NCBI GenBank assembly: GCA_048772705.1
Contig: JBLWGC010000121.1
Span: forward strand, 124,001 to 188,000
Source of the DNA: Leidyana gryllorum EB-2025a
Lineage: Eukaryota > Protista > Apicomplexa
DNA: 64,000 bases
Direction of reading: 5' to 3'
Shown: piece by piece, positions 5,496 through 49,514 of the stretch
Layout of the letters: each line of letters begins with the position of its first letter
How positions within the stretch are numbered: position 1 is the stretch's first letter
Program-made: the position numbers and the translations under genes
Notes under the pieces: generated by a model
Databases searched by the model: none
What the model saw: the letters and a program-made list of their open reading frames with translations, nothing else
Told to the model about the DNA's origin: nothing

Positions 5496-5530
5496 TCAAC
5501 TCTCTCTATCGCTACTCAATTTTATATCCC

Positions 5531-8026: not shown

Positions 8027-8090
8027 ATTGATTATTTGTCGCGTTTTCGGGTAGGAGGCTGAGAAAGCATGTTCAGAAGGGGGCTGCAAC

Positions 8091-15031: not shown

Positions 15032-15415
15032 ATGAAGTTCTCTGCTGTCGCTGCCGTTGTACTCCTCGCCATTGTTGGCCGCGCCCAAGAAGCATCCTCT
15101 GAAGACATTGTCGCCACCTCACCTGTCCAGTTGGTTGATGTTTCTAGCACTGTGGAGCCGATCCACATCAGCACTGCAGCTCCAGTCGACACGGCAGAGG
15201 TCCATGTCTCCAGCGAGGAAGTCCAGGGAAGTCATTCTACATCTTCTCTGGATCCCGCCGAAGCTGCAGCCAGTGGTACCGTTGTTGTGGGAACAGACGA
15301 CAACAAGGTTTCGGCGTCCGCCTCCTCAACTCAGGCGGCCAGCGGAGTCTCAGCCAACTTGGCTCTGTGGAGCACTGCCTCTATCGCGGTTGGCCTCCTT
15401 GGACTCTCTCAATAG
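15032..15415 (+). CDS. Small secreted Ser/Thr-rich mucin-like protein, predicted GPI-anchored (127 aa), related to the 14372 gene
   Basis: MKFSAVAAVVLLAIVGRA signal peptide; C-terminal SGVSANLALWSTASIAVGLLGLSQ. Confidence 0.8.
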   Translation: MKFSAVAAVVLLAIVGRAQEASSEDIVATSPVQLVDVSSTVEPIHISTAAPVDTAEVHVSSEEVQGSHSTSSLDPAEAAASGTVVVGTDDNKVSASASSTQAASGVSANLALWSTASIAVGLLGLSQ

Positions 15416-15919: not shown

Positions 15920-18900
15920 ATGAGGCTCGTGCTCTTTTTCGCTCTTGCGCTCCCTTTAGCGCTGAGTGAGACTAGCAGATCCGCGATTTTCAAGGAATGG
16001 AGGGAAAGGAGTCATGTAGATGCAACATCGCCCGGGAAGACTACAGTCATCCGACCTTGGAATGGAATCCACAATGAATATGGATCATCGGCAGAGGACC
16101 CTTTTTTCAGGTGAGTGAATCTCGACTTCGGCACGAACTGTCTGCTCAGTGCTAATGGCGTCCCGGTTTATGATGACCAGACTCAATTCGAGCATCTCAT
16201 CTCCTCCTCATCACATGGATCCAACCCGCAATTAAACCAGAAGGTTCTTTACTCCGATTCGGAGGGCAGTACATTGACAGTTTCCAATGTCGCCGAAACC
16301 CAATTAGCATCGCGCGCACAGACTGTGATGCGCATACGGTCCCTTACAACGCCTAACGCTGAGAGTGCGGATAGGCGAAATCTAGGTTTATTGCACATCG
16401 TGGAAGATGAGGAATCCGAAAGCTCAACCTTCCCTGTATCTACAGAGTCGACTGTAAGCTTTACACCCACCGGAAGCACCGACTCATCAACATCATCTGA
16501 GCTCACCGTTCCGACTGAGACTACGGGAACTGAAGAAAGCTCATCCCTCCCGAAAATAGCCACTGTGTCGAGCGACAGCTCCACTTTCACCGACACTACG
16601 GATCAGATCACAAGCACTACGGACCCTGAAACAGCCACTTTCTCTCAGAGTTCCGCATACTTAGAAAGCAATGAATCCGCCACCACCTCATCTGGGTTCG
16701 AAGCCACAGATTCGACCGAAATGTCCATAAATACCGTGTGGACGAGTGACACGCCCGCCCCCACAGAACCCGAAACATTCACCGAAACCGAGACATTGAC
16801 AGAAACTAAACCCTCATTCGAAGGATCGACATCAACAGAGACTTCAGTTGAAGCTTCGGATGTCACTGATGAATCGAATTTAACACATACACTGACTGAA
16901 GCTACAAGCTCGCCAGGGAACTCGACTGACTCATCGACTTCTACTGAAGGATTGACTCCAACCGAGACATCGACTTCCACTGAGAGTCCGACTACGACTG
17001 AGACATCGACTTCCACTGAGAGTGCGACTACCACTGAGACATCGACTTCTACTGAAGGATTGACTCCAACCGAGACATCGACTTCCACTGAGAGTCCGAC
17101 TACGACTGAGACATCGACTTCCACTGAGAGTGCGACTACCACTGAGACATCGACTTCCACTGAGAGTCCGACTACGACTGAGACATCGACTTCCACTGAG
17201 AGTCCGACTACCACTGAGACATCGACTTCCACTGAGAGTCCGACTACAACTGAGACATCGACTTCCACTGAGAGTCCGACTACGACTGAGACATCGACTT
17301 CCACTGAGAGTCCGACTACAACTGAGACATCGACTTCCACTGAGAGTCCGACTACCACTGAGACATCGACTTCCACTGAGAGTCCGACTACAACTGAGAC
17401 ATCGACTTCCACTGAGAGTCCGACTACGACTGAGACATCGACTTCCACTGAGAGTCCGACTACAACTGAGACATCGACTTCCACTGAGAGTCCAACTACG
17501 ACTGAGACATCGACTTCCACTGAGAGTCCGACTACGACTGAGACATCGACTTCCACTGAGAGTCCGACTACCACTGAGACATCGACTTCCACTGAGACAT
17601 CGACTTCCACTGAGAGTCCGACTACAACTGAGACATCGACTTCCACTGAGAGTCCAACTACGACTGAGACATCGACTTCCACTGAGAGTCCGACTACGAC
17701 TGAGACATCGACTTCCACTGAGAGTCCGACTACGACTGAGACATCGACTTCCACTGAGAGTCCGACTACAACTGAGACATCGACTTCCACTGAGAGTCCG
17801 ACTACGACTGAGACATCGACTTCCACTGAGAGTCCGACTACGACTGAGACATCGACTTCCACTGAGAGTCCGACTACAACTGAGACATCGACTTCCACTG
17901 AGAGTCCGACTACAACTGAGACATCGACTTCCACTGAGAGTCCGACTACAACTGAGACATCGACTTCCACTGAGAGTCCAACTACGACTGAGACATCGAC
18001 TTCCACTGAGAGTCCGACTACGACTGAGACATCGACTTCCACTGAGACATCGACTTCCACTGAGACATCGACTTCCACTGAGAGTCCGACTACCACTGAG
18101 ACATCGACTTCCACTGAGAGTCCGACTACCACTGAGACATCGACTTCCACTGAGAGTCCGACTACGACTGAGACATCGACTTCCACTGAGACATCGACTT
18201 CCACTGAGAGTCCGACTACAACTGAGACATCGACTTCCACTGAGAGTCCAACTACGACTGAGACATCGACTTCCACTGAGAGTCCGACTACGACTGAGAC
18301 ATCGAGTTCTACTGAAGGATTGACTCCAACTGAGACATCGACTTCCACTGAGAGTCCGATTACAACTGAGACATCGAGTTCTACTGAAGGATTGACTCCA
18401 ACTGAGACATCGACTTCCACTGAGAGTCCGACTACCACTGAGACATCGACTTCTACTGAAGGATTGACTCCAACTGACAAATCGACTTCCACTGAGAGTC
18501 CGACTACGACTGAGACATCGACTTCTACTGAAGGATTGACTCCAACTGACAAATCGACTTCCACTGAGAGTCCGACTACCACTGAGACATCGACTTCTAC
18601 TGAAGGATTGACTCCAACTGACAAATCGACTTCCACTGAGAGTCCGACTACGACTGAGACATCGACTTCTACTGAAGGATTGACTCCAACTGACACATCG
18701 ACTTCTACTGAGAGTCCGACTACCACTGACACATCGACTTCCACTGAGAGTCCGACTACCACTGAGACATCGACTTCCACTGAGAGTCCGACTACGACTG
18801 AGACATCGACTTCTACTGAAGGATTGACTCCAACTGACAAATCGACTTCCACTGAGAGTCCGACTACGACTGAGACATCGACTTCTACTGAAGGATTGAC

Positions 18901-21900
18901 TCCAACTGACACATCGACTTCCACTGAGAGTCCGACTACGACTGAGACATCGACTTCCACTGAGAGTCCGACTACCACTGAGACATCGACTTCCACTGAG
19001 AGTCCGACTACAACTGAGACATCGACTTCTACTGAAGGATTGACTCCAACTGAGACATCGACTTCCACTGAGAGTCCGACTACCACTGAGACATCGACTT
19101 CCACTGAGAGTCCGACTACGACTGAGACATCGACTTCCACTGAGAGTCCGACTACGACTGAGACATCGACTTCTACTGAAGGATTGACTCCAACTGACAA
19201 ATCGACTTCCACTGAGAGTCCGACTACGACTGAGACATCGACTTCTACTGAAGGATTGACTCCAACTGACACATCGACTTCCACTGAGAGTCCGACTACC
19301 ACTGAGAGTCCGACTCTGACTGAAACCTCCACTGAGGCGTCGACCTCCGATGAGAGTCCGACTCTGACGTCGACTTCCACTGAGACGTCCACTGAGACTG
19401 AGAGTTCCACTGAGGCGTCGACCTCCACTGAGACGTCCACTGAGAGCCCGACTCTGACTGAAACCTCCACTGAGGCGTCGACCTCCGATGAGAGTCCGAC
19501 TCTGACGTCGACTTCCACTGAGACGTCCACTGAGACTGAGAGTTCCACTGAGGCGTCGACCTCCACTGAGAGTCCGACTCTGACGTCGACTTCCACTGAG
19601 ACGTCCACCTCCACTGAGAGTCCGACTCTGACGTCGACTTCCACTGAGACGTCCACCTCCACTGAGAGTCCGACTCTGACGTCGACTTCCACTGAGACTG
19701 AGAGTTCCACTGAGACGTCGACCTCCACTGAGAGTCCGACTCTGACGTCGACTTCCACTGAGACTGAGAGTTCCACTGAGGCGTCGACCTCCACTGAGAG
19801 TCCGACTCTGACGTCGACTTCCACTGAGACGTCCACTGAGACTGAGAGTTCCACTGAGGCGTCCACTGAGAGTCCGACTCTGACTGAGACGTCGACTTCC
19901 ACTGAGACGTCCACTGAGACCTCCACGGAGAGCCCGACTCTGACTGAAACTTCCACTGAGGCGTCGACCTCCGATGAGAGTCCGACTCTGACGTCGACTT
20001 CCACTGAGACTGAGAGTTCCACTGAGGCGTCGACCTCCACTGAGAGTCCGACTCTGACGTCGACTTCCACTGAGACGTCCACTGAGACTGAGAGTTCCAC
20101 TGAGGCGTCCACTGAGAGTCCGACTCTGACTGAGACGTCGACTTCCACTGAGACGTCCACTGAGACCTCCACGGAGAGCCCGACTCTGACTGAAACTTCC
20201 ACTGAGGCGTCGACCTCCGATGAGAGTCCGACTCTGACGTCGACTTCCACTGAGACTGAGAGTTCCACTGAGGCGTCGACCTCCACTGAGAGTCCGACTC
20301 TGACGTCGACTTCCACTGAGACGTCCACTGAGACTGAGAGTTCCACTGAGGCGTCCACTGAGAGTCCGACTCTGACTGAGACGTCGACTTCCACTGAGAC
20401 GTCCACTGAGACCTCCACGGAGAGCCCGACTCTGACTGAAACTTCCACTGAGGCGTCGACCTCCGATGAGAGTCCGACTCTGACGTCGACTTCCACTGAG
20501 ACTGAGAGTTCCACTGAGACGTCGACCTCCACTGAGAGTCCGACTCTGACGTCGACTTCCACTGAGACTGAGAGTTCCACTGAGACGTCGACCTCCACTG
20601 AGAGTCCGACTCTGACGTCGACTTCCACTGAGACTGAGAGTTCCACTGAGGCGTCGACCTCCACTGAGAGTCCGACTCTGACGTCGACTTCCACTGAGAC
20701 GTCCACTGAGACTGAGAGTTCCACTGAGGCGTCGACCTCCACTGAGAGTCCGACTCTGACGTCGACTTCCACTGAGACTGAGAGTTCCACTGAGGCGTCG
20801 ACCTCCACTGAGAGTCCGACTCTGACGTCGACTTCCACTGAGACGTCCACTGAGACTGAGCGTTCCACTGAGGCGTCGACCTCCACTGAGAGTCCGACTC
20901 TGACGTCGACTTCCACTGAGACGTCCACTGAGACTGAGAGTTCCACTGAGGCGTCGACCTCCACTGAGACCGAGAGTTCCACTGAGGCGTCGACCTCCAC
21001 TGAGACGTCCACTGAGAGCCCGACTCTGACTGAAACCTCCACTGAGGCGTCGACCTCCGATGAGAGTCCGACTCTGACGTCGACTTCCACTGAGACGTCC
21101 ACTGAGACTGAGAGTTCCACTGAGGCGTCGACCTCCACTGAGAGTCCGACTCTGACGTCGACTTCCACTGAGACGTCCACCTCCACTGAGAGTCCGACTC
21201 TGACGTCGACTTCCACTGAGACGTCCACCTCCACTGAGAGTCCGACTCTGACGTCGACTTCCACTGAGACGTCCACCTCCACTGAGAGTCCGACTCTGAC
21301 GTCGACTTCCACTGAGACTGAGAGTTCCACTGAGACGTCGACCTCCACTGAGAGTCCGACTCTGACGTCGACTTCCACTGAGACTGAGAGTTCCACTGAG
21401 ACGTCGACCTCCACTGAGAGTCCGACTCTGACGTCGACTTCCACTGAGACGTCCACTGAGACTGAGCGTTCCACTGAGGCGTCGACCTCCACTGAGAGTC
21501 CGACTCTGACGTCGACTTCCACTGAGACGTCCACTGAGACTGAGAGTTCCACTGAGGCGTCGACCTCCACTGAGACCGAGAGTTCCACTGAGGCGTCGAC
21601 CTCCACTGAGACGTCCACTGAGAGCCCGACTCTGACTGAAACCTCCACTGAGGCGTCGACCTCCGATGAGAGTCCGACTCTGACGTCGACTTCCACTGAG
21701 ACTGAGAGTTCCACTGAGGCGTCGACCTCCACTGAGAGTCCGACTCTGACGTCGACTTCCACTGAGACGTCCACTGAGACTGAGAGTTCCACTGAGGCGT
21801 CCACTGAGAGTCCGACTCTGACTGAGACGTCGACTTCCACTGAGACGTCCACTGAGACCTCCACGGAGAGCCCGACTCTGACTGAAACTTCCACTGAGGC

Positions 21901-24900
21901 GTCGACCTCCGATGAGAGTCCGACTCTGACGTCGACTTCCACTGAGACTGAGAGTTCCACTGAGGCGTCGACCTCCACTGAGAGTCCGACTCTGACGTCG
22001 ACTTCCACTGAGACGTCCACTGAGACTGAGAGTTCCACTGAGGCGTCCACTGAGAGTCCGACTCTGACTGAGACGTCGACTTCCACTGAGACGTCCACTG
22101 AGACCTCCACGGAGAGCCCGACTCTGACTGAAACTTCCACTGAGGCGTCGACCTCCGATGAGAGTCCGACTCTGACGTCGACTTCCACTGAGACGTCCAC
22201 TGAGACTGAGAGTTCCACTGAGGCGTCGACCTCCACTGAGAGTCCGACTCTGACGTCGACTTCCACTGAGACGTCCACTGAGACTGAGAGTTCCACTGAG
22301 GCGTCGACCTCCACTGAGACGTCCACTGAGAGCCCGACTCTGACTGAAACCTCCACTGAGGCGTCGACCTCCGATGAGAGTCCGACTCTGACGTCGACTT
22401 CCACTGAGGCGTCGACCTCCGATGAGAGCCCGACTCCGACTGAAACTTCCACTTTGACGGACGAGTCATCAACAGAGACATCGACTGAGTCGTCCACTTC
22501 CAGTGAGAGCTCAGGTTCACCAGAGACATCGACTGAGACGTCTACTTCGTCTGACAACTCCACTTCGACGGACGAGTCATCAACAGAGACATCGACGGAG
22601 TCTTCCACTTCCAGTGAGGGCTCAAGTTCACCAGAGACATCGACGGAGTCTTCCACTTCCAGTGAGAGCTCAAGTTCACCAGAGACATCGACTGAGACGT
22701 CTACTCCGTCTGACAACTCCACTTCGACGGACGAGTCATCAACAGAGACATCGACGGAGTCTTCCACTTCCAGTGAGAGCTCAAGTTCACCAGAGACATC
22801 GACTGAGACGTCTACTCCGTCTGACAACTCCACTTCGACGGACGAGTCATCAACAGAGACATCGACCGAGTCGTCCACTTCCAGTGAGAGCTCAGGTTCA
22901 CCAGAGACATCGACTGAGGCGTCTACTTCGTCTGACAACTCCACTTCGACGGACGAGTCATCAACAGAGACATCGACGGAGTCTTCCACTTCCAGTGAGA
23001 GCTCGACTTCTACTGCCGAGAGCACCGCTGAGGTCACTCAATCCACTGACGAGAGCACCGCTGAGGTCACTCAATCCACTGACGAGAGCACCTCTGAGGT
23101 CACTCAGTCTACTGACGAGGGCACCTCTGAGGTCACTCAATCCACTGACGACAGCACCTCTGAGGTCACTCAATCCACTGACGAGAGCACCGCTGAGGTC
23201 ACTCCATCCACTGACGACAGCACCGCTGATCTCACTCAGTCTACTGTCGAGAGCACCTCTGAGGTCACTCAATCCACTGACGACAGCACCGTTGAGGTCA
23301 CTCAATCGACTGACGACAGCACCGCTGATCTCACTCAGTCTACTGACGAGAGCACCGCTGAGGTCACTCAATCCACTGACGACAGCACCGCTGATCTCAC
23401 TCAGTCTACTGACGACAGCACCGTTGAGGTCACTCAATCCACGGACGACAGCACCTCTGAGGTCACTCAATCCACTGACGACAGCACCGTTGAGGTCACT
23501 CAATCCACTGACGACAGCACCGCTGAGGTCACTCAATCCACTGACGACAGCACCTCTGAGGTCACTCAATCCACTGACGAGAGCACCGTTGAGGTCACTC
23601 CATCCACTGACGAGAGCACCGTTGAGGTCACTCCATCCACTGACGAGAGCACCGCTGAGGTCACTCAGTCTACTGTCGAGAGCACCGCTGAGGTCACTCA
23701 ATCCACTGACGACAGCACCGCTGATCTCACTCAGTCTATTGTCGAGAGCACCGTTGAGGTCACTCAATCCACTGACGAGAGCACCTCTGAGGTCACTCAA
23801 TCCACTGACGAGAGCACCGTTGAGGTCACTCAATCCACTGACGACAGCACCGCTGAGGTCACTCAATCCACTGACGACAGCACCTCTGAGGTCACTCAAT
23901 CCACTGACGACAGCACCGCTGAGGTCACTCAATCCACTGACGAGAGCACCGTTGAGGTCACTCAATCCACGGACGACAGCACCTCTGAGGTCACTCAATC
24001 CACTGACGACAGCACCGTTGAGGTCACTCAATCCACTGACGACAGCACCGCTGAGGTCACTCAATCCACTGACGAGAGCACCGTTGAGGTCACTCAATCC
24101 ACTGACGAGAGCACCTCTGAGGTCACTCAATCCACTGACGAGAGCACCGCTGAGGTCACTCAATCCACTGACGAGAGCACCGCTGAGGTCACTCAATCCA
24201 CTGAGGAGAGCACCGCTGAGGTCACTCAATCCACTGACGACAGCACCGTTGAGGTCACTCAATCCACTGACGACAGCACCGTTGAGGTCACTCAATCCAC
24301 TGACGACAGCACCGCTGATCTCACTCAGTCTACTGTCGAGAGCACCGTTGAGGTCACTCAATCCACTGACGAGAGCACCGCTGAGGTCACTCAATCCACT
24401 GACGACAGCACCGTTGAGGTCACTCAATCCACTGACGACAGCACCGCTGAGGTCACTCAATCCACTGACGACAGCACCGTTGAGGTCACTCAATCCACTG
24501 ACGAGAGCACCTCTGAGGTCACTCAATCCACTGACGACAGCACCGTTGAGGTCACTCAATCCACTGACGACAGCACCGTTGAGGTCACTCAATCCACTGA
24601 CGAGAGCACCGCTGAGGTCACTCAATCCACTGACGAGAGCACCGCTGAGGTCACTCAATCCACTGACGAGAGCACCGCTGAGGTCACTCAATCCACTGAC
24701 GAGAGCACCGCTGAGGTCACTCAATCCACTGACGACAGCACCGTTGAGGTCACTCAATCCACTGACGAGAGCACCTCTGAGGTCACTCAATCCACTGACG
24801 AGAGCACCGCTGAGGTCACTCAATCCACTGACGAGAGCACCGTTGAGGTCACTCAATCCACTGACGAGAGCACCGTTGAGGTCACTCCATCCACTGACGA

Positions 24901-27900
24901 GAGCACCGTTGAGGTCACTCAATCCACTGACGAGAGCACCTCTGAGGTCACTCAATCCACTGACGACAGCACCGTTGAGGTCACTCAATCCACTGACGAC
25001 AGCACCGCTGAGGTCACTCAATCCACTGACGACAGCACCGCTGAGGTCACTCAATCCACTGACGACAGCACCGTTGAGGTCACTCAATCCACTGACGAGA
25101 GCACCGCTGAGGTCACTCAATCCACTGACGAGAGCACCGTTGAGGTCACTCAATCCACTGACGAGAGCACCGCTGAGGTCACTCAATCCACTGACGAGAG
25201 CACCGTTGAGGTCACTCAATCCACTGACGACAGCACCGTTGAGGTCACTCAATCCACTGACGACAGCACCGTTGAGGTCACTCAATCCACTGACGAGAGC
25301 ACCGCTGAGGTCACTCAATCCACTGACGAGAGCACCGTTGAGGTCACTCAGTCTACTGACGACAGCACCGTTGAGGTCACTCAATCCACTGACGACAGCA
25401 CCGCTGAGGTCACTCAGTCTACTGTCGACAGCACCGCTGAGGTCACTCAATCCACTGACGAGAGCACCGCTGAGGTCACTCAATCCACTGACGACAGCAC
25501 CGCTGAGGTCACTCAATCCACTGACGACAGCACCGCTGAGGTCACTCAATCCACTGACGACAGCACCGCTGAGGTCACTCAATCCACTGACGAGAGCACC
25601 GTTGAGGTCACTCAATCCACTGACGAGAGCACCGTTGAGGTCACTCAATCCACTGACGAGAGCACCGTTGAGGTCACTCAATCCACTGACGAGAGCACCG
25701 TTGAGGTCACTCAATCCACTGACGAGAGCACCGCTGAGGTCACTCAATCCACTGACGACAGCACCGTTGAGGTCACTCAATCCACTGACGAGAGCACCGC
25801 TGAGGTCACTCAATCCACTGACGAGAGCACCGCTGAGGTCACTCAATCCACTGACGAGAGCACCGCTGAGGTCACTCAATCCACTGACGAGAGCACCGCT
25901 GAGGTCACTCAATCCACTGACGACAGCACCGTTGAGGTCACTCAATCCACTGTCGAGAGCACCGTTGAGGTCACTCAATCCACTGACGACAGCACCGTTG
26001 AGGTCACTCAATCCACTGACGAGAGCACCGTTGAGGTCACTCAATCCACTGACGAGAGCACCGTTGAGGTCACTCCATCCACTGAGGAGAGCACCTCTGA
26101 GGTCACTCCATCCACTGACGACAGCACCGTTGAGGTCACTCAATCCACTGTCGAGAGCACCTCTGAGGTCACTCAATCCACTGTCGAGAGCACCGTTGAG
26201 GTCACTCAATCCACTGACGACAGCACCGCTGAGGTCACTCCATCCACTGACGACAGCACCGTTGAGGTCACTCAGTCTACTGACGAGAGCACCGCTGAGG
26301 TCACTCAATCCACTGACGACAGCACCGCTGAGGTCACTCAATCCACTGACGACAGCACCGCTGAGGTCACTCAATCCACTGACGAGAGCACCGTTGAGGT
26401 CACTCAATCCACTGACGACAGCACCGCTGAGGTCACTCAGTCTACTGTCGAGAGCACCGTTGAGGTCACTCAGTCTACTGACGACAGCACCGTTGAGGTC
26501 ACTCAATCCATTGACGACAGCACCGTTGAGGTCACTCAATCCACTGACGAGAGCACCGCTGAGGTCACTCAATCCACTGACGACAGCACCGCTGAGGTCA
26601 CTCAATCCACTGACGACAGCACCGCTGAGGTCACTCAATCCACTGACGACAGCACCGCTGAGGTCACTCAATCCACTGACGACAGCACCGCTGAGGTCAC
26701 TCAATCCACTGAGGAGAGCACCGTTGAGGTCACTCAGTCTACTGACGACAGCACCGTTGAGGTCACTCAATCCATTGACGACAGCACCGTTGAGGTCACT
26801 CAATCCACTGACGAGAGCACCGTTGAGGTCACTCAATCCACTGACGAGAGCACCTCTGAGGTCACTCAATCCACTGACGACAGCACCGTTGAGGTCACTC
26901 AATCCACTGACGAGAGCACCGTTGAGGTCACTCAATCCACTGACGAGAGCACCGTTGAGGTCACTCAATCCACTGACGAGAGCACCGCTGAGGTCACTCA
27001 ATCCACTGACGAGAGCACCGTTGAGGTCACTCAATCCACTGACGAGAGCACCGTTGAGGTCACTCAATCCACTGACGACAGCACCGTTGAGGTAACTCAA
27101 TCCACTGACGAGAGCACCGTTGAGGTAACTCAATCCACTGACGAGAGCACCGTTGAGGTAACTCAATCCACTGACGACAGCACCGCTGAGGTCACTCAGT
27201 CTACTGTCGAGAGCACCGTTGAGGTCACTCAGTCTACTGACGAGAGCACCGTTGAGGTCACTCAATCCACTGACGAGAGCACCGCTGAGGTCACTCATCC
27301 ACTGAGAGAGCACCGTGAGGTCACTCAATCCACTGACGACAGCACCGCTGAGGTCACTCAATCCACTGACGAGAGCACCGTTGAGGTCACTCAATCCACT
27401 GACGAGAGCACCGTTGAGGTCACTCAATCCACTGACGAGAGCACCGCTGAGGTCACTCAATCCACTGACGAGAGCACCGCTGAGGTCACTCAATCCACTG
27501 ACGAGAGCACCGCTGAGGTCACTCAATCCACTGACGACAGCACCGCTGAGGTCACTCAATCCACTGACGAGAGCACCGTTGAGGTCACTCAATCCACTGA
27601 CGAGAGCACCGTTGAGGTCACTCAATCCACTGACGAGAGCACCGTTGAGGTCACTCAATCCACTGACGAGAGCACCGTTGAGGTCACTCAATCCACTGAC
27701 GAGAGCACCGCTGAGGTCACTCAATCCACTGAGGAGAGCACCGTTGAGGTCACTCCATCCACTGACGACAGCACCGCTGAGGTCACTCAATCCACTGAGG
27801 AGAGCACCGTTGAGGTCACTCAATCCACTGAGGAGAGCACCGTTGAGGTCACTCAATCCACTGAGGAGAGCACCGTTGAGGTCACTCCATCCACTGACGA

Positions 27901-36900: not shown

Positions 36901-39900
36901 GTCCACCGGAGACGTGACTGAGATCACCGAAACTACTGATGACGTGACTCAATCCACCAATGAAGTGACTGAAATCAATCAGTCCACCGGAGACGTGACT
37001 GAGATCACCGAAACTACAGAAGACGTAACTGAAATCACTCAGCCCACTGGAGACGTGACTGAGATCACCGAGACTACAGATGACGTGACTGGAGTCACTC
37101 AGTCCACGGGAGACGTGACTGAGATCACCGAAACTACTGATGACGTAACTGAAGTCACTCAATCCACCAATGAAGTGACTGAAATCACTCAGTCCACCGG
37201 AGACGTGACTGAGATCACCGAAACTACAGATGGCGTGACTGAAATCACTCAGTCCACCGGAGACGTGACTGAGATCACCGAAACTACAGAAGACGTAACT
37301 GAAGTGACTCAATCCACCGGAGACGTGACTGAGATCACCGAAACTACAGATGACGTGACTGAAATCACTCAATCCACGGGAGACGTGACTGAGATCACCG
37401 AAACTACAGAAGACGTAACTGAAGTGACTCAATCCACCGGAGACGTGACTGAAATCACTCAGTCCACCAATGAAGTGACTGAAATCACTCAATCCACCAA
37501 TGAAGTGACTGAAATCACTCAGTCCACCGGAGACGTGACTGAGATCACCGAAACTACAGAAGACGTAACTGAAGTGACTCAATCCACCGGAGACGTGACT
37601 GAGATCACCGAAACTACAGATGACGTGACTGAAATCACTCAATCCACGGGAGACGTGACTGAGATCACCGAAACTACTGATGACGTAACTGAAGTGACTC
37701 AATCCACCGGAGACGTGACTGAAATCACTCAGTCCACCGGAGACGTGACTGAGATCACCGAAACTACAGATGACGTAACTGAAGTGACTCAATCCACCGG
37801 AGACGTGACTGAGATCACCGAAACTACTGATGACGTGACTGAAATCACTCAATCCACGGGAGACGTGACTGAGATCACCGAAACTACTGATGACGTAACT
37901 GAAGTCACTCAATCCACCAATGAAGTGACTGAAATCACTCAGTCCACCGGAGACGTGACTGAGATCACCGAAACTACTGATGACGTAACTGAAGTGACTC
38001 AATCCACCAATGAAGTGACTGAAATCACTCAGTCCACCGGAGACGTGACTGAGATCACCGAAACTACCGGTGCCGTAACTGAAGTGACTCAATCCACCAA
38101 TGAAGTGACTGAAATCACTCAGTCCACCGGAGACGTGACTGAGATCACCGAGACTACCGGTGCCGTAACTGAAGTGACTCAATCCACCGGAGACGTGACT
38201 GAGATCACCGAAACTACAGATGGCGTGACTGAAGTGACTCAATCCACCGGAGACGTGACTGAGATCACCGAAACTACAGATGACGTGACTGAAATCACTC
38301 AATCCACGGGAGACGTGACTGAGATCACCGAAACTACAGAAGACGTAACTGAAGTGACTCAATCCACCGGAGACGTGACTGAAATCACTCAGTCCACCAA
38401 TGAAGTGACTGAAATCACTCAATCCACCAATGAAGTGACTGAAATCACTCAGTCCACCGGAGACGTGACTGAGATCACCGAAACTACAGAAGACGTAACT
38501 GAAGTGACTCAATCCACCGGAGACGTGACTGAGATCACCGAAACTACAGATGACGTGACTGAAATCACTCAATCCACGGGAGACGTGACTGAGATCACCG
38601 AAACTACTGATGACGTAACTGAAGTGACTCAATCCACCGGAGACGTGACTGAAATCACTCAGTCCACCGGAGACGTGACTGAGATCACCGAAACTACAGA
38701 TGACGTAACTGAAGTGACTCAATCCACCGGAGACGTGACTGAGATCACCGAAACTACTGATGACGTGACTGAAATCACTCAATCCACGGGAGACGTGACT
38801 GAGATCACCGAAACTACTGATGACGTAACTGAAGTCACTCAATCCACCAATGAAGTGACTGAAATCACTCAGTCCACCGGAGACGTGACTGAGATCACCG
38901 AAACTACTGATGACGTAACTGAAGTGACTCAATCCACCAATGAAGTGACTGAAATCACTCAGTCCACCGGAGACGTGACTGAGATCACCGAAACTACCGG
39001 TGCCGTAACTGAAGTGACTCAATCCACCAATGAAGTGACTGAAATCACTCAGTCCACCGGAGACGTGACTGAGATCACCGAGACTACCGGTGCCGTAACT
39101 GAAGTGACTCAATCCACCGGAGACGTGACTGAGATCACCGAAACTACAGATGGCGTGACTGAAGTGACTCAATCCACCGGAGACGTGACTGAGATCACCG
39201 AAACTACAGATGACGTGACTGAAGTGACTCAATCCACCAATGAAGTGACTGAAGTCACTCAGTCCACCGGAGACGTGACTGAGATCACCGAAACTACAGA
39301 TGACGTAACTGAAGTGACCCAATCCACCAATGAAGTGACTGAAATCACTCAGTCCACCGGAGACGTGACTGAGATCACCGAAACTACAGATGACGTGACT
39401 GAAGTCACTCAGTCCACCGGAGACGTGACTGAGATCACCGAAACTACTGATGACGTAACTGAAGTGACTCAATCCACCAATGAAGTGACTGAAATCACTC
39501 AGTCCACCGGAGACGTGACTGAGATCACCGAAACTACAGATGACGTGACTGAAGTCACTCAGTCCACCGGAGACGTGACTGAGATCACCGAAACTACTGA
39601 TGACGTAACTGAAGTGACCCAATCCACCAATGAAGTGACTGAAATCACTCAGTCCACCGGAGACGTGACTGAGATCACCGAAACTACAGATGACGTAACT
39701 GAAGTGACTCAATCCACCGGAGACGTGACTGAGATCACCGAAACTACAGATGACGTGACTGAAGTGACTCAATCCACCAATGAAGTGACTGAAGTCACTC
39801 AGTCCACCGGAGACGTGACTGAGATCACCGAAACTACAGATGACGTGACTGAAGTGACTCAATCCACCAATGAAGTGACTGAAATCACTCAGTCCACCGG

Positions 39901-42900
39901 AGACGTGACTGAGATCACCGAAACTACTGATGACGTAACTGAAGTGACCCAATCCACCAATGAAGTGACTGAAATCACTCAGTCCACCGGAGACGTGACT
40001 GAGATCACCGAAACTACAGATGACGTAACTGAAGTGACCCAATCCACCAATGAAGTGACTGAAATCACTCAGTCCACCGGAGACGTGACTGAGATCACCG
40101 AAACTACAGATGACGTGACTGAAGTCACTCAGTCCACCGGAGACGTGACTGAGATCACCGAAACTACAGATGACGTGACTGAAGTGACTCAATCCACCAA
40201 TGAAGTGACTGAAATCACTCAGTCCACCGGAGACGTGACTGAGATCACCGAAACTACTGATGACGTAACTGAAGTGACCCAATCCACCAATGAAGTGACT
40301 GAAATCACTCAGTCCACCGGAGACGTGACTGAGATCACCGAAACTACAGATGACGTGACTGAAGTGACTCAATCCACCAATGAAGTGACTGAAATCACTC
40401 AGTCCACGGGAGACGTGACTGAGATCACCGAAACTACAGAAGACGTAACTGAAGTGACTCAATCCACCGGAGACGTGACTGAGATCACCGAAACTACAGA
40501 TGACGTGACTGAAATCACTCAATCCACGGGAGACGTGACTGAGATCACCGAAACTACTGATGACGTAACTGAAGTCACTCAATCCACCAATGAAGTGACT
40601 GAAATCACTCAGTCCACCAGAGACGTGACTGAGATCACCGAAACTACAGAAGACGTAACTGAAGTGACTCAATCCACCGGAGACGTGACTGAGATCACCG
40701 AAACTACAGATGACGTGACTGAAATCACTCAATCCACGGGAGACGTGACTGAGATCACCGAAACTACTGATGACGTAACTGAAGTCACTCAATCCACCAA
40801 TGAAGTGACTGAAATCACTCAGTCCACCGGAGACGTGACTGAGATCACCGAAACTACAGATGACGTAACTGAAGTGACTCAATCCACCAATGAAGTGACT
40901 GAAATCACTCAGTCCACCGGAGACGTGACTGAGATCACCGAGACTACGGATGACGTGACTGAAATGACTCAATCCACCAATGAAGTGACTGAAATCACTC
41001 AGTCCACCGGAGACGTGACTGAGATCACCGAGACTACGGATGACGTGACTGAAATGACTCAATCCACCGGAGACGTGACTGAGATTACCGAAACTACATT
41101 TGACGTAACTGAAGTGACTCAATCCACCAATGAAGTGACTGAAATCACTCAGTCCACCGGAGACGTGACTGAGATCACCGAAACTACAGATGGCGTGACT
41201 GAAATCACTCAGTCCACCAATGAAGTGACTGAAATGACTCAATCCACCGGAGACGTGACTGAGATTACCGAAACTACATTTGACGTAACTGAAGTGACTC
41301 AATCCACCAATGAAGTGACTGAAATCACTCAGTCCACCGGAGACGTGACTGAGATCACCGAAACTACAGATGACGTAACTGAAGTCACTCAATCCACCAA
41401 TGAAGTGACTGAAATGACTCAGTCCACCGGAGACGTGACTGAGATCACCGAAACTACAGATGACGTGACTGAAGTGACTCAATCCACCAATGAAGTGACT
41501 GAAATCACTCAGTCCACCGGAAACGTGACTGAGATCACCGAAACTACAGATGGCGTGACTGAAATCACTCAGTCCACCGGAGACGTGACTGAGATCACCG
41601 AAACTACAGATGACGTGACTGAAGTGACTCAATCCACCAATGAAGTGACTGAAGTCACTCAGTCCACCGGAGACGTGACTGAGATCACCGAAACTACGGA
41701 TGCCGTAACTGAAGTGACTCAATCCACCAATGAAGTGACTGAAGTCACTCAGTCCACCGGAGACGTGACTGAGATCACCGAGACTACGGATGGCGTAACT
41801 GAAGTGACTCAATCCACCAATGAAGTGACTGAAGTCACTCAGTCCACCGGAGACGTGACTGAGATCACCGAAACTACTGATGACGTAACTGAAGTGACTC
41901 AATCCACCAATGAAGTGACTGAAGTCACTCAGTCCACCGGAGACGTGACTGAGATCACCGAAACTACGGATGCCGTAACTGAAGTGACTCAATCCACCAA
42001 TGAAGTGACTGAAATCACTCAGTCCACCGGAGACGTGACTGAGATCACCGAGACTACGGATGACGTGACTGAAATGACTCAATCCACCGGAGACGTGACT
42101 GAGATTACCGAAACTACATTTGACGTGACTGAAGTGACTCAATCCACCAATGAAGTGACTGAAATCACTCAGTCCACCGGAGACGTGACTGAGATCACCG
42201 AAACTACAGATGGCGTGACTGAAATGACTCAGTCCACCGGAGACGTGACTGAGATCACCGAAACTACAGATGACGTGACTGAAGTGACTCAATCCACCAA
42301 TGAAGTGACTGAAGTCACTCAGTCCACCGGAGACGTGACTGAGATCACCGAAACTACGGATGCCGTAACTGAAGTGACTCAATCCACCAATGAAGTGACT
42401 GAAGTCACTCAGTCCACCGGAGACGTGACTGAGATCACCGAGACTACGGATGACGTAACTGAAGTGACTCAATCCACCAATGAAGTGACTGAAGTCACTC
42501 AGTCCACCGGAGACGTGACTGAGATCACCGAAACTACTGATGACGTAACTGAAGTGACTCAATCCACCAATGAAGTGACTGAAGTCACTCAGTCCACCGG
42601 AGACGTGACTGAGATCACCGAAACTACGGATGCCGTAACTGAAGTGACTCAATCCACCAATGAAGTGACTGAAATCACTCAGTCCACCGGAGACGTGACT
42701 GAGATCACCGAGACTACGGATGACGTGACTGAAATGACTCAATCCACCGGAGACGTGACTGAGATTACCGAAACTACATTTGACGTAACTGAAGTGACTC
42801 AATCCACCAATGAAGTGACTGAAATCACTCAGTCCACCGGAGACGTGACTGAGATCACCGAAACTACAGATGGCGTGACTGAAATGACTCAGTCCACCGG

Positions 42901-45900
42901 AGACGTGACTGAGATCACCGAAACTACATTTGACGTAACTGAAGTGACTCAATCCACCAATGAAGTGACTGAAATCACTCAGTCCACCGGAGACGTGACT
43001 GAGATCACCGAAACTACAGATGACGTGACTGAAGTGACTCAATCCACCAATGAAGTGACTGAAATCACTCAGTCCACCGGAGACGTGACTGAGATCACCG
43101 AAACTACAGATGACGTGACTGAAGTGACTCAATCCACCGGAGACGTGACTGAGATCACCGAAACTACTGATGACGTAACTGAAGTGACTCAATCCACCAA
43201 TGAAGTGACTGAAATCACTCAGTCCACCGGAGACGTGACTGAGATCACCGAAACTACAGATGACGTGACTGAAGTGACTCAATCCACCAATGAAGTGACT
43301 GAAATCACTCAGTCCACCGGAGACGTGACTGAGATCACCGAAACTACAGATGGCGTGACTGAAATGACTCAATCCACCGGAGACGTGACTGAGATCACCG
43401 AAACTACGGATGCCGTAACTGAAGTGACTCAATCCACCAATGAAGTGACTGAAGTCACTCAGTCCACCGGAGACGTGACTGAGATCACCGAGACTACGGA
43501 TGACGTAACTGAAGTGACTCAATCCACCAATGAAGTGACTGAAATCACTCAGTCCACCGGAGACGTGACTGAGATCACCGAAACTACAGATGGCGTGACT
43601 GAAATCACTCAGTCCACCGGAGACGTGACTGAGATCACCGAAACTACAGATGACGTGACTGAAGTGACTCAATCCACCAATGAAGTGACTGAAATCACTC
43701 AGTCCACCGGAAACGTGACTGAGATCACCGAAACTACTGATGACGTAACTGAAGTGACTCAATCCACCAATGAAGTGACTGAAGTCACTCAGTCCACCGG
43801 AGACGTAACTGAGATCACCGAAACTACGGATGCCGTAACTGAAGTGACTCAATCCACCGGAGACGTGACTGAGATCACCGAGACTACGGATGACGTAACT
43901 GAAGTGACTCAATCCACCAATGAAGTGACTGAAATCACTCAGTCCACCGGAGACGTGACTGAGATCACCGAAACTACAGATGGCGTGACTGAAGTCACTC
44001 AGTCCACCGGAGACGTGACTGAGATCACCGAAACTACGGATGCCGTAACTGAAGTGACTCAATCCACCAATGAAGTGACTGAAGTCACTCAGTCCACCGG
44101 AGACGTGACTGAGATCACCGAAACTACTGATGACGTAACTGAAGTGACTCAATCCACCAATGAAGTGACTGAAGTCACTCAGTCCACCGGAGACGTGACT
44201 GAGATCACCGAAACTACGGATGCCGTAACTGAAGTGACTCAATCCACCAATGAAGTGACTGAAGTCACTCAGTCCACCGGAGACGTGACTGAGATCACCG
44301 AAACTACTGATGACGTAACTGAAGTGACTCAATCCACCAATGAAGTGACTGAAGTCACTCAGTCCACCGGAGACGTGACTGAGATCACCGAAACTACGGA
44401 TGCCGTAACTGAAGTGACTCAATCCACCAATGAAGTGACTGAGATCACCGAAACTACAGGTGACGTAACTGGAGTCACTCAGTCCACCGGAGACGTGACT
44501 GAGATCACCGAGACTACGGATGACGTGACTGAAATGACTCAATCCACCGGAGACGTGACTGAGATCACCGAAACTACAGATGACGTAACTGAAGTGACTC
44601 AATCCACCAATGAAGTGACTGAGATCACCGAAACTACAGGTGACGTAACTGGAGTCACTCAGTCCACCGGAGACGTGACTGAGATCACCGAGACTACGGA
44701 TGACGTGACTGAAATGACTCAATCCACCGGAGACGTGACTGAGATTACCGAAACTACATTTGACGTAACTGAAGTGACTCAATCCACCAATGAAGTGACT
44801 GAAGTCACTCAGTCCACCGGAGACGTGACTGAGATCACCGAGACTACGGATGACGTGACTGAAATGACTCAATCCACCAATGAAGTGACTGAAGTCACTC
44901 AGTCCACCGGAGACGTGACTGAGATCACCGAAACTACTGATGACGTAACTGAAGTGACTCAATCCACCAATGAAGTGACTGAAGTCACTCAGTCCACCGG
45001 AGACGTGACTGAGATCACCGAGACTACGGATGACGTGACTGAAATGACTCAATCCACCAATGAAGTGACTGAAGTCACTCAGTCCACCGGAGACGTGACT
45101 GAGATCACCGAGACTACGGATGCCGTAACTGAAGTGACTCAATCCACCAATGAAGTGACTGAAATTACTCAGTCCACCGGAGACGTGACTGAGATCACCG
45201 AGACTACGGATGACGTGACTGAAATGACTCAATCCACCGGAGACGTGACTGAGATCACCGAAACTACAGATGACGTAACTGAAGTGACTCAATCCACCAA
45301 TGAAGTGACTGAAATCACTCAGTCCACCGGAGACGTGACTGAGATCACCGAGACTACGGATGACGTGACTGAACTGACTCAATCCACCAATGAAGTGACT
45401 GAAATCACTCAGTCCACCGGAGACGTGACTGAGATCACCGAGACTACGGATGACGTAACTGAAATGACTCAATCCACCGGAGACGTGACTGAGATCACCG
45501 AAACTACAGATGACGTAACTGAAGTGACTCAATCCACCAATGAAGTGACTGAGATCACCGAAACTACAGATGACGTGACTGAAGTGACTCAATCCACCGG
45601 AGACGTGACTGAGATCACTCAATCCACCGGAGACATGACTGAGATCACCGAAACTACAGATGACGTGACTGAACTGACTCAATCCACCAATGAAGTGACT
45701 GAAATCACTCAGTCCACCGGAGACGTGACTGAGATCACCGAAACTACAGATGACGTAACTGAAATGACTCAATCCACCGGAGACGTGACTGAGATCACCG
45801 AAACTACAGATGACGTGACTGAAGTGACTCAATCCACCAATGAAGTGACTGAGATCACCGAAACTACAGATGACGTGACTGAAATCACTCAATCCACCGG

Positions 45901-48778
45901 AGACGTGACTGAGATCACCGAGACTACGGATGACGTAACTGAAATGACTCAATCCACCGGAGACGTGACTGAGATCACCGAAACTACAGATGACGTAACT
46001 GAAGTAACTCAATCCACCAATGAAGTGACTGAGATCACCGAAACTACAGATGACGTGACTGAAGTGACTCAATCCACCGGAGACGTGACTGAGATCACTC
46101 AATCCACCGGAGACGTGACTGAGATCACCGAAACTACAGATGACGTGACTGAAATGACTCAATCCACCAATGAAGTGACTGAAGTCACTCAGTCCACCGG
46201 AGACGTGACTGAGATCACCGAGACTACGGATGCCGTAACTGAAGTGACTCAATCCACCAATGAAGTGACTGAAATTACTCAGTCCACCGGAGACGTGACT
46301 GAGATCACCGAGACTACGGATGACGTGACTGAAATGACTCAATCCACCGGAGACGTGACTGAGATCACCGAAACTACAGATGACGTGACTGAACTGACTC
46401 AATCCACCAATGAAGTGACTGAAATCACTCAGTCCACCGGAGACGTGACTGAGATTACCGAAACTACAGATGACGTAACTGAAATGACTCAATCCACCGG
46501 AGACGTGACTGAGATCACCGAAACTACAGATGACGTAACTGAAGTGACTCAATCCACCAATGAAGTGACTGAAATCACTCAGTCCACCGGAGACGTGACT
46601 GAGATCACCGAGACTACGGATGACGTAACTGAAATGACTCAATCCACCGGAGACGTGACTGAGATCACTCAATCCACCGGAGACGTGACTGAGATCACCG
46701 AAACTACAGATGACGTGACTGAACTGACTCAATCCACCAATGAAGTGACTGAAATCACTCAGTCCACCGGAGACGTGACTGAGATCACCGAAACTACAGA
46801 TGACGTAACTGAAATGACTCAATCCACCGGAGACGTGACTGAGATCACCGAAACTACAGATGACGTAACTGAAGTGACTCAATCCACCAGTGAAGTGACT
46901 GAAATCACTCAGTCCACCGGAGACGTGACTGAGATCACCGAGACTACGGATGCCGTAACTGAAGTGACTCGATCCACCGGAGACGTGACTGAGATCACCG
47001 AAACTACAGATGACGTAACTGAAGTGACTCAATCCACCAATGAAGTGACTGAAATCACTCAATCCACCGGAGACGTGACTGAGATCACCGAAACTACAGA
47101 TGACGTGACTGAAATCACTCAATCCACCGGAGACGTGACTGAGATCACCGAAACTACAGATGACGTAACTGAAGTGACTCAATCCACCAATGAAGTGACT
47201 GAAATCACTCAGTCCACCGGAGACGTGACTGAGATCACCGAGACTACGGATGCCGTAACTGAAGTGACTCAATCCACCGGAGACGTGACTGAGATCACCG
47301 AAACTACTGATGACGTAACTGAAGTGACTCAATCCACCAATGAAGTGACTGAAATCACTCAGTCCACCGGAGACGTGACTGAGATCACCGAGACTACGGA
47401 TGCCCTAACTGAAGTGACTCAATCCACCGGAGACGTGACTGAGATCACCGAAACTACAGATGACGTAACTGAAGTGACTCAATCCACCAATGAAGTGACT
47501 GAAATCACTCAGTCCACCGGAGACGTGACTGAGATCACCGAGACTACGGATGCCGTAACTGAAGTGACTCAATCCACCGGAGACGTGACTGAGATCACCG
47601 AAACTACAGATGACGTGACTGAAATCACTCAATCCACCGGAGACGTGACTGAGATCACCGAAACTACAGATGACGTAACTGAAGTGACTCAATCCACCAA
47701 TGAAGTGACTGAAATCACTCAGTCCACCGGAGACGTGACTGAGATCACCGAGACTACGGATGCCGTAACTGAAGTGACTCAATCCACCGGAGACGTGACT
47801 GAGATCACCGAAACTACAGATGACGTGACTGAAATCACTCAATCCACCGGAGACGTGACTGAGATCACCGAAACTACTGATGACGTAACTGAAGTGACTC
47901 AATCCACCAATGAAGTGACTGAAATCACTCAGTCCACCGGAGACGTGACTGAGATCACCGAGACTACGGATGCCGTAACTGAAGTGACTCAATCCACCGG
48001 AGACGTGACTGAGATCACCGAGACTACGGATGCCCTAACTGAAGTGACTCAATCCACCGGAGACGTGACTGAGATCACCGAAACTACAGATGACGTAACT
48101 GAAGTGACTCAATCCACCAATGAAGTGACTGAAATCACTCAGTCCACCGGAGACGTGACTGAGATCACCGAGACTACGGATGCCGTAACTGAAGTGACTC
48201 AATCCACCGGAGACGTGACTGAGATCACCGAAACTACTGATGACGTAACTGAAGTGACTCAATCCACCAATGAAGTGACTGAGATCACCGAAACTACAGA
48301 TGACGTAACTGAAGTGACTCAATCCACCAATGAAGTGACTGAAATCACTCAGTCCACCGGAGACGTGACTGAGATCACCGAGACTACGGATGCCGTAACT
48401 GAAGTGACTCAATCCACCGGAGAGGTGACTGAGATCACCGAAACTACAGATGACGTAACTGAAGTGACTCAATCCACCAATGAAGTGACTGAAATCACTC
48501 AGTCCACCGGAGACGTGACTGAGATCACCGAAACTACAGATGAGTTCACTAAGACCACGGATGGTGACAGCACCGAGGAGGGAGGGGAAACAGACTCCGA
48601 GACAAGTGATGGCGCCACCAGCACACCAGAGGAGACTACTAAGCCCACTGAAGAGCAGAGCACGACGAGCTCAATTTGGCTGGATGTAGATCAGACTTGG
48701 CCAGGAGATGGAATTAGAATGGAAATGCTGGGGGTTTCGGCCTCCGCAGCAGCAATGATGTTTTTGATGTTAGCATAG
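15920..48778 (+). CDS. Giant acidic Thr/Ser-rich mucin-like surface protein, ~10,939 aa; exon 1 15920-16110, intron 16111-16149, exon 2 16150-48778
   Basis: MRLVLFFALALPLALS signal peptide. A 39-bp GTGAGT..CAG intron joins it in frame to the 32.6-kb open frame. About 31.6 kb is tandem repeats. The C-terminus GDGIRMEMLGVSASAAAMMFLMLA is GPI-signal-like. Confidence 0.88.
16930..19298 (+). repeat. Coding tandem repeat A: 36-bp / 12-aa unit (TETSTSTESPTT; variant TEGLTPT)
   Basis: Unit act gag aca tcg act tcc act gag agt ccg act acN; about 65 copies with occasional half-unit deletions. Confidence 0.95.
19299..22450 (+). repeat. Coding repeat B: modular ESPTLTSTSTET / TESSTEAST units with 246-bp higher-order blocks
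   Basis: Identical blocks recur at a 246-bp offset around 19800-20480 and again near 21700-22200. Confidence 0.9.
22451..23010 (+). repeat. Coding repeat C: ~120-bp unit (TDESSTETSTESSTSSESSSSPETSTETSTPSDNSTS)
   Basis: About 4-5 copies are visible, with NST sequons. Confidence 0.85.
23011..35055 (+). repeat. Coding tandem repeat D: 33-bp / 11-aa unit (TD[DE]ST[AVS]EVT[QP]S)
   Basis: Unit act gac gag agc acc gct gag gtc act caa tcc; about 365 copies by length. Confidence 0.95.
35056..48545 (+). repeat. Coding tandem repeat E: 30-bp / 10-aa units cycling DVTEITETTD - DVTEVTQSTN - EVTEITQSTG
   Basis: The 30-bp period is visible as column alignment in the listing; about 450 units by length, in 60/90-bp higher-order groups. 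Confidence 0.95.
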
Positions 48779-48982: not shown

Positions 48983-49264
48983 ATGAAGGTTGCCACTATT
49001 GTTTTCGCTCTTATCTCTATTGTGTCTGCCGAGAAGCCAGCACTCCAGTTGAACCCTCTTGAGGGGGACGTGGAGGTGGATTCAGCGGGAGACGCGGATG
49101 TCGGTACTGCATCGGAGGATTCAAGTTCGACCGAGTTCACCAGTACGTCTATTGAAGAAACAACTACCAGTACAACTACAAAGAAGAGCGGAGCTGGTCC
49201 GAACACTCACTTGGCTGCGTTGGCTCCAGTGGTGGCAATCTTGGGGCTTAAGTATTTGGCTTGA
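48983..49264 (+). CDS. Small secreted Thr/Ser/acidic GPI-type surface protein (93 aa); paralog of 61806-62075
   Basis: Signal peptide, NPLEGD, TTTSTTTKKSGAGPNTHLAALAPVVAILGLKYLA. Confidence 0.85.
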   Translation: MKVATIVFALISIVSAEKPALQLNPLEGDVEVDSAGDADVGTASEDSSSTEFTSTSIEETTTSTTTKKSGAGPNTHLAALAPVVAILGLKYLA

Positions 49265-49514
49265 GTATTTTACTTCCAGGTTACCAATGCAACAATGGCG
49301 CGATACCAGTACAAAGACGAATGTATTGCGGGATACTTCTGCCGTCCGAGGAGGGGAGGGTGATCCCGTGGTGTTCCTGGCCCCCGATGAGAGGGTGTAG
49401 GAGTACCGAGTCTTGTCAGTCAATCCTGTCTATCTTTTTCGATGTTTGTGACTCGATCTGTGGATCTGGAACAAGTAGATCCAGAGAATCAACAAGTCTT
49501 GAGAACAGCTACTC

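Follow-up and report, generated by a model that had tools for sequence, protein, structure and literature searches.

The 64,000-nt stretch of DNA analyzed here (hereafter the window; positions 124,001 to 188,000 of the forward strand of contig JBLWGC010000121.1, assembly GCA_048772705.1) comes from Leidyana gryllorum EB-2025a, a terrestrial eugregarine and gut parasite of insects. It contains a single uninterrupted open reading frame (ORF) of 10,887 codons (16115-48778, plus strand) that, in a gene model derived from the sequence, is preceded by a signal-peptide exon and a 39-nt intron. The first-pass annotation of the window described this locus as a giant, nearly all-repeat acidic mucin with a signal peptide and a tail resembling a glycosylphosphatidylinositol (GPI) signal. 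Our analysis indicates that it is probably a genuine two-exon gene for a secreted, cysteine-free and extremely acidic repeat protein of ~10,900 residues. The predicted parts of the gene, including five repeat blocks that were resolved with Tandem Repeats Finder and unit counts, are the following (coordinates are those of the window):

15920-16110, plus strand: exon 1, with the start codon, the signal peptide (residues 1-16) and the first 47 residues of the mature head.
16111-16149, plus strand: phase 2 intron of 39 nt, GTGAGT...CTCAG, containing an in-frame TGA.
16150-16924, plus strand: non-repeat head of exon 2, ~258 aa, with ~100 residues of mixed composition followed by Ser/Thr/Glu-rich low-complexity sequence.
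16925-19307, plus strand: block A, 66 units of 36 nt (12 aa), consensus T-E-T-S-T-S-T-E-S-P-T-T; Thr 47 %, Ser 24 %, Pro 7.8 %.
19308-23011, plus strand: blocks B and C, irregular Ser/Thr/Glu/Pro repeats with periods of 48/78/246 nt and 111/159 nt; Pro 4.7 %.
23012-35061, plus strand: block D, 365 units of 33 nt (11 aa), T-Q-S-T-D-E-S-T-V-E-V; net charge -1,081; Pro 1.4 %.
35062-48528, plus strand: block E, ~449 units of 30 nt (10 aa), V-T-E-[IV]-T-[QE]-[ST]-T-[GDN]-[DE]; Pro 0.2 %.
48529-48778, plus strand: tail, with a 55-aa acidic Ser/Thr/Gly linker, the candidate omega region P-G-D-G, a polar spacer, a hydrophobic C-terminus and the stop codon.

The ORF track, which starts at 16115, misses the signal peptide, as the first-pass annotation had pointed out. 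The ATG at 15920 is the first one past the upstream stop, lies 195 nt upstream of the ORF start and opens a peptide with the n-region M-R, a 13-residue hydrophobic core (Kyte-Doolittle means of 2.0-2.8 for 11-residue stretches) and a cleavage-type site, A-L-S/E, as in a textbook signal peptide. Exon 1 and the giant ORF share one frame, their sole separator being the TGA inside the GTGAGT donor, and removal of 16111-16149 eliminates this stop and preserves the frame. We anchored introns by homology, through alignment of GalNAc-transferase proteins of gregarines and Cryptosporidium with four loci of the same genome; these introns are 41-74 nt long, with GTGAGT or GTAAGT donors and YAG acceptors, and the mode of intron length in Gregarina niphandrodes is 37 bp (PMC9250747). 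By this standard, the proposed 39-nt intron appears ordinary for the lineage in both size and consensus, and the splicing of a signal exon to a 32.6-kb exon, proposed in the first-pass annotation, is upheld at the level of the gene model. Elsewhere in the window, candidate GT...AG introns of 31 and 44 nt (around 6860-7000 and 7620-7760) connect adjacent minus-strand ORFs within 4314-8089, the most downstream of which has an Abhydrolase_2 match at its end; this fits the very short length of introns in this genome.

The predicted spliced precursor comprises, as assembled, 63 + 1 + 10,875 = 10,939 aa, with a computed mass of ~1.15 MDa that agrees with the earlier estimate of more than 1 MDa before glycosylation. 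At its C-terminus, inspection reveals P-G-D-G, then the spacer I-R-M-E-M and then 16-17 hydrophobic residues (Kyte-Doolittle means up to 2.05) that end the protein, no cytoplasmic residues being present beyond them. The layout, previously noted as GPI-like, thus looks like that of a GPI signal and not like a type-I anchor with a cytoplasmic tail. Many proteins in this genome carry GPI-signal-like tails.

The repeats occupy ORF residues 271-10805, that is, 96.8 % of the ORF (~96 % in the first estimate), and six residues that had already been named as dominant make up most of the sequence: Thr (32.1 %), Glu (16.1 %), Ser (15.2 %), Val (10.9 %), Asp (8.8 %) and Gln (5.5 %). The repeats had also been described as devoid of Cys and almost devoid of basic residues. 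The ORF as a whole holds only 23 Lys and Arg and one Cys, at ORF residue 9, and the spliced product would have no Cys at all because this sole Cys codon lies inside the proposed intron. In the predicted product, Asp and Glu exceed Lys and Arg by ~2,690, and 25 % of the residues are Asp or Glu.

The blocks differ considerably in composition, with Ser plus Thr amounting to 71 % in A, 68 % in B and C, 46 % in D and 40 % in E. Blocks A-C (~2,000 aa) combine a Ser plus Thr content of ~70 % with 5-8 % Pro and are without Val, Ile or Gln; by composition, they read as classical Pro/Thr/Ser mucin sequence. In contrast, blocks D and E, which together account for ~8,500 aa or 78 % of the protein, contain at most 1.4 % Pro and 15-19 % Val plus Ile, and their units are strictly patterned, with a 7-8-residue alternating stretch and a 3-residue turn of Gly, Asn, Asp, Ser or Thr. 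The designation "acidic mucin" therefore suits blocks A-C but, for blocks D and E, "mucin" is a functional guess. The blocks grade into each other: block D emerges from an S-T-x-E-S motif of block C, and block E derives from block D via a gradual transition at ~35,020-35,260, with the loss of one residue from the unit. Within block E, the units are arranged in higher-order patterns of 3, 5 and 8 units, such that adjacent units are never identical and unit identity peaks at lags of 3 and 5.

An open frame in such repeats is no proof of coding in itself because the repeats contain further frames that stay open over thousands of codons, namely an 8,123-codon antisense ORF and +1 ORFs of 1,530 and 2,603 codons. 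These frames, along with the lack of detected homologues, are what would be expected if the array were a non-coding satellite or a dead gene, its long frame being a by-product of stop-free units. We nevertheless consider this explanation very improbable. Frame 0 alone is open from the head to the tail through all five blocks, so that it traverses five unrelated unit types in addition to the 270 stop-free codons of unique sequence in the head, and it is bracketed by a signal peptide in the same frame and a hydrophobic segment at its end. All repeat periods are multiples of three. When the units of blocks D and E were put in register by anchors, between-unit nucleotide diversity at codon positions 1/2/3 was 0.017/0.076/0.133 in D and 0.18/0.07/0.41 in E, that is, variation is greatest at third positions. 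The amino acid replacements among units are conservative (D/E, V/A/I/M, Q/E and S/T), and at several positions Thr never changes although 2-4 synonymous codons are in use; at position 8 of the block E unit, Thr is found in 445 of 445 units and is encoded by ACC, ACA, ACG and ACT. This pattern of variation indicates that the array is coding and that the repeats are kept under protein-level selection. The antisense ORF (22961-47332, minus strand), which spans blocks D and E and in D reads roughly G-L-S-D-L-N-G-A-L-V-S per unit, would have the variable site on its codon position 1 and is, for this reason, most likely a by-product of the stop-free units. The only frameshift in the array, which is compensated, was found by alignment to neighboring units:

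27291-27320, plus strand: aberrant 10-aa unit, with three separate 1-nt deletions in one 33-nt unit.

The deletions, at an AA, a CG and a TT, produce seven out-of-frame residues, H-P-L-R-E-H-R, before frame 0 is regained within 25 nt, and the alternative +1 frame is broken at this point. The unit could represent either a compensated frameshift under selection or a local consensus error, and its likeness to a locally noisy consensus bears on a further explanation, in which the gene is real but the 31.6-kb array is over-expanded, collapsed or mis-joined and the figure of 10,900 residues is off by a large factor. Units of 30-36 nt make an array difficult to assemble, and 33-75 % of the 101-mers inside the blocks are not unique in the array. 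However, no exact internal repeat exceeds 996 nt, and exact duplications of multi-kilobase size are absent; the longest repeat belongs to a higher-order duplication in block E with a period of 930 nt at 37298/38228 (region 37298-39224), and a second such duplication in block E, at 41794-42787, has a period of 660 nt and 333 nt of exact identity. Furthermore, there are 43 distinct nucleotide units in D and 57 in E, which are regionally distributed (Met- and Phe-containing variants are confined to the distal half of E), the transitions between blocks are graded, and an intact frame over 32.6 kb is rarely compatible with random assembly noise. Exon 1, the head and the tail are each present in a single copy in the assembly (15.5 Mb, 237 contigs), and no second haplotig occurs. 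Collectively, the internal evidence on the assembly of the array is reassuring but not decisive, and we regard a gross error in the length as rather unlikely.

Searches for relatives were made with exon 1, the head and the tail separately. None of the three matched a Pfam family, in agreement with the earlier remark that no folded domain is recognizable. For the head, a word search gave no match, HMMER, run exhaustively and without a length filter against 1.84 billion cluster representatives, gave one compositional match only, and no look-alike was found by ESM Atlas features. Block E scored at most 0.87 in the ESM Atlas, with low recognition and nothing usable, and a profile word search seeded with this block found no relatives within the 132-420-aa size range, a window in which longer or shorter kin could be missed. 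Within the genome itself, strong protein matches to the block E repeats occur only inside this gene, the matches outside it being weak (20-30 % identity, on three other contigs), and a DNA search with block D, which skipped the array itself, found no other locus. In these searches, then, the head and the repeats have no detectable relatives.

With regard to O-glycosylation, the genome contains seven Glyco_transf_7C loci:

Contig C133, 194044-194223 and 159045-159227: two Glyco_transf_7C matches ~35 kb apart.
Contig C186, 41135-41317: Glyco_transf_7C match.
Contig C208, 310262-310402: Glyco_transf_7C match.
Contig C82, 178811-178990: Glyco_transf_7C match.
Contig C202, 12959-13144: Glyco_transf_7C match.
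Contig C182, 22504-22650: Glyco_transf_7C match.

Three of the seven loci (C202, C82 and C186) have a Ricin-B lectin match no more than a few hundred bases further on; the two domains on C202 lie in one 480-aa open frame, and the match on C186 is interrupted by two stops. At two other loci, Pfam recognized GT2 plus Glyco_transf_7C. The combination of GT2, Glyco_transf_7C and Ricin-B is the architecture of polypeptide GalNAc-transferases, and the nearest named relatives are indeed polypeptide GalNAc-transferases of Gregarina, Blabericola, Porospora and Cryptosporidium. One of the GalNAc-transferase ORFs shares 59-60 % identity with proteins from Gregarina spp. and Blabericola migrator and 49 % with one from G. 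niphandrodes, the relatives from Porospora and Cryptosporidium ranking next; this identifies the host as a terrestrial eugregarine other than G. niphandrodes. The locus counts suggest a family of polypeptide GalNAc-transferases no smaller than that of Cryptosporidium, for which five candidates have been reported, and the genome accordingly has the enzymatic capacity for mucin-type O-glycosylation. As for the anchor, PIG-A (C230, 78 bits) and PIG-M (C33, 39.8 bits) are present.

Most likely, then, the gene encodes a giant sugar-coated surface or slime protein. The signal peptide would bring the chain into the endoplasmic reticulum, where the hydrophobic C-terminal tail would be swapped for a GPI anchor or would otherwise keep the chain in the membrane, and Golgi GalNAc-transferases might then add O-GalNAc to many of the ~5,100 Ser and Thr residues. 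Charge repulsion and the glycans would keep the chain extended, forming a polyanionic brush on the parasite surface with the head in the distal position. Such a brush could serve as a protective, lubricating coat in the insect gut and contribute to the cell coat that covers the epicytic folds. The possible roles named in the first-pass annotation were a glycocalyx, a gliding mucus trail and a cyst-wall tether. Because the product is without Cys, polymerization of the gel-forming type would be impossible, and neither the head nor the tail contains a Pfam domain, such as vWD or cystine-knot, of gel-forming mucins; we would thus expect a monomeric filament, tethered or shed, and not a disulfide-linked gel. 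Shedding into the acidic mucus trail of gliding gregarines is also conceivable, by analogy with GP900, a mucin-like protein of Cryptosporidium that is relocated to the surface and shed into the gliding trails of sporozoites, where it has been proposed to act as a lubricant (PMC9111948, PMC9713705). The mucus left by Gregarina gamonts is Alcian-blue-positive and of undetermined composition (PMC3849649), and the genome study of the marine gregarine Porospora found no equivalents of GP900 or of mucins (PMC9250747).

Several observations weigh against this extended, glycosylated polyanion. No orthologue or paralogue was found, in the searches with the head and the repeats, that would show conservation. 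The O-glycosylation proposed for the repeats draws only on their composition and on the enzyme repertoire. GPI8/Peptidase_C13, PIG-T/Gpi16 and GAA1 were not detected in the six-frame genome searches, in which a missing match does not amount to absence of the gene; Cryptosporidium possesses PIG-K, PIG-T and PIG-U (PMC9713705). The three 1-nt deletions at 27291-27320 could equally be local assembly noise. Above all, blocks D and E, which make up four fifths of the chain, are not only nearly free of Pro but also rich in the beta-branched residues Val, Ile and Thr in strict alternation, with turns rich in Gly, Asn and Asp and with one repeat position at which only hydrophobic residues (Ile, Val, Met or Leu) substitute for each other, and AlphaFold2 (AF2) folds both blocks as beta-solenoids.

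These last features raise the alternative that D and E form a folded cross-beta solenoid of the curli or antifreeze type, with two 10-11-residue strand-turn units per coil, a core of S/V/V/Q (in D) or T/I/Q (in E), a Glu and Thr ladder surface and, possibly, stabilization by Ca2+. With each coil adding 4.8 A, such a solenoid would amount to a rigid, acidic rod ~200 nm long that holds the Pro-containing mucin segment and the head off the membrane, much as the extender region of a giant bacterial adhesin does. Block D displays S-x5-Q with a period of 11 and the alternation S-x-V-x-V-x-Q, the pattern of a curli half-coil; it matches the Pfam family Curlin_rpt (PF07012) at 284.8 bits (cut-off 20.7, E 1.1e-86), a score made up of 42 stretches of ~7 bits each in biased periodic sequence, and its best sequence match in the PDB is Escherichia coli CsgA (8enq), in register on S/N-x5-Q but marginal (E 0.012). 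The AF2 model of block D is all-beta, with 8-residue strands every 11 residues (predicted local distance difference test score, pLDDT, 66; predicted template modeling score, pTM, 0.65), and the best model of block E has 7-residue strands every 10 residues (pLDDT 95.9, pTM 0.89). In a structure search, the block E model superposed on CsgA of Pontibacter (8c50, Z 24.4) and on a Ca2+-dependent beta-helical antifreeze protein (3p4g, Z 21.1, root-mean-square deviation 2.7 A over 228/240 residues). However, the five models of block E scatter between pLDDT 29 and 96, the input alignments held nothing but segments of this very array (14 or 17 of them), and AF2 is documented to predict beta-solenoids spuriously for repeat sequences (Pratt et al., PMC11795689), which is why we discount the predicted solenoids. 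Block D also matches the Pfam family Apolipoprotein (A1/A4/E), which, like Curlin_rpt, has an 11/22-residue period, so that periodicity and composition can explain the Curlin match, and the G-x-G-N turn of the curli motif, S-x5-Q-x-G-x-G-N-x-A-x3-Q, is absent from block D, which has S-T-D-E in its place. After consideration, we rejected membership in the curli family. Further points against a solenoid are the charge-hydropathy position of every repeat block, which is on the disordered side of the boundary (a mean net charge per residue of 0.26-0.27, with -0.27 and low hydropathy in D and E), the acidic residue present on both strand faces in at least 38 % of the block E units, and the gradual derivation of D and E from mucin-type blocks. 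Weighing all this, we retain the extended glycosylated polyanion as the preferred reading and treat the solenoid as a minority one, which we judge unlikely without dismissing it. It is slightly more doubtful still that the ~8,500 residues of D and E form one continuous, highly acidic, Thr/Glu-faced beta-solenoid, a GPI-tethered rod of ~200 nm capped by a flexible mucin segment; such a solenoid would have arisen by convergence with bacterial curli and with Ca2+-dependent antifreeze and adhesin solenoids. If real, it would exceed every known single-chain beta-solenoid in length by a wide margin and would add a new structural principle for the cell coat or the gliding interface of gregarines.

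The genomic neighborhood offers some context for a role of the giant protein on the cell surface. The upstream neighbors include Na/Ca-exchanger-like, GILT-like and aminomethyltransferase genes, and F-box genes and a reverse-transcriptase fragment lie downstream. Directly flanking the giant gene are three small ORFs of about 93-129 aa each:

14372-14761, plus strand: small ORF with a signal peptide, a Ser/Thr/Glu/Ala-rich body and a hydrophobic C-terminus.
15032-15415, plus strand: small ORF with a signal peptide, a Ser/Thr/Glu/Ala-rich body and a hydrophobic C-terminus.
48983-49265, plus strand: small ORF with a signal peptide, a Ser/Thr/Glu/Ala-rich body and a hydrophobic C-terminus.

All three look like GPI-type mini-mucins, and because they share with the giant gene the layout of signal peptide, Ser/Thr-rich body and hydrophobic tail, the arrangement suggests that the giant gene is situated within a candidate surface-coat locus. 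The first two small ORFs both begin with M-K-F-S-A-V and look like paralogues.

The giant protein is one of the largest predicted for Apicomplexa. Its single-copy gene, with a unique head and tail that can be addressed by antibodies, makes it a concrete candidate for the coat or trail material of gregarines, and the preservation of Thr via four synonymous codons across 445 units shows how such arrays stay under protein-level selection.

Among characterized proteins, the natural comparison is with GP900 of Cryptosporidium parvum, which we take to be ~1,800-1,900 aa long and thus about six-fold shorter than the gregarine protein. Both come from the branch that unites Cryptosporidium and gregarines, and both have a signal peptide and long, acidic, Thr-rich mucin-like regions. 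The O-linked HexNAc chemistry would likewise be supplied by the same GalNAc-transferase family, for the gregarine protein as a predicted capacity only. Unlike GP900, a type-I transmembrane protein with a cytoplasmic tail that undergoes cleavage along the secretory pathway, the gregarine protein ends in a hydrophobic segment; it also has no counterpart of the Cys-bearing non-repeat domains of GP900, and the database searches with its head and block E repeats, in which GP900 was not aligned directly, revealed no sequence similarity between the two.

The TcMUC and TcSMUG mucins of Trypanosoma cruzi consist of a signal peptide, a Thr-rich O-glycosylated body and a GPI signal and form a dense protective and adhesive coat. 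They are 100-200 aa long and carry glycans initiated by O-GlcNAc. The gregarine gene similarly lies among small genes of the same layout, but its product is ~50-100 times longer, and the likeness involves no homology. A parallel in size is offered by the giant tethered mucins of animals, such as MUC16, which are megadalton single chains composed mostly of tandem repeats, serve as long elements of the glycocalyx and can be shed. The gregarine protein is also a megadalton chain that consists mostly of tandem repeats; however, SEA domains, a transmembrane helix and a cytoplasmic tail are carried by the animal mucins, in which the repeats are rich in Pro and not strongly acidic, whereas the gregarine protein is 25 % Asp and Glu and has no SEA, vWD or CK domains and no Cys.

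The resemblance to CsgA resides in the S-x5-Q periodicity of block D, in the alternating hydrophobic core positions and in the superposition of the AF2 models on CsgA solenoids. Yet CsgA consists of five imperfect 19-23-aa repeats with G-x-G-N turns, is nearly neutral and is exported by the Csg machinery, whereas block D comprises 365 near-identical, highly acidic units without a Gly/Asn turn and is encoded by a eukaryote; periodicity and composition probably drive the resemblance. Fungal adhesins of the Als and Flo families are similar in overall plan, with a signal peptide, a unique head, a stalk of long O-glycosylated repeats in which Thr and beta-branched residues abound, and a GPI signal. 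They measure 1-2 thousand aa and bear a folded ligand-binding head (Ig-like or PA14). The gregarine protein has the same succession of signal peptide, unique N-terminal head, Thr/Val/Ile-rich repeats and GPI-like tail, but it is far more acidic and its head has no recognizable fold. Unless the beta-solenoid reading proves true, it is thus an extreme example and not a new principle: an exceptionally large member of the familiar class of surface proteins built from a signal peptide, Ser/Thr-rich repeats and a tether, and not a new kind of system.

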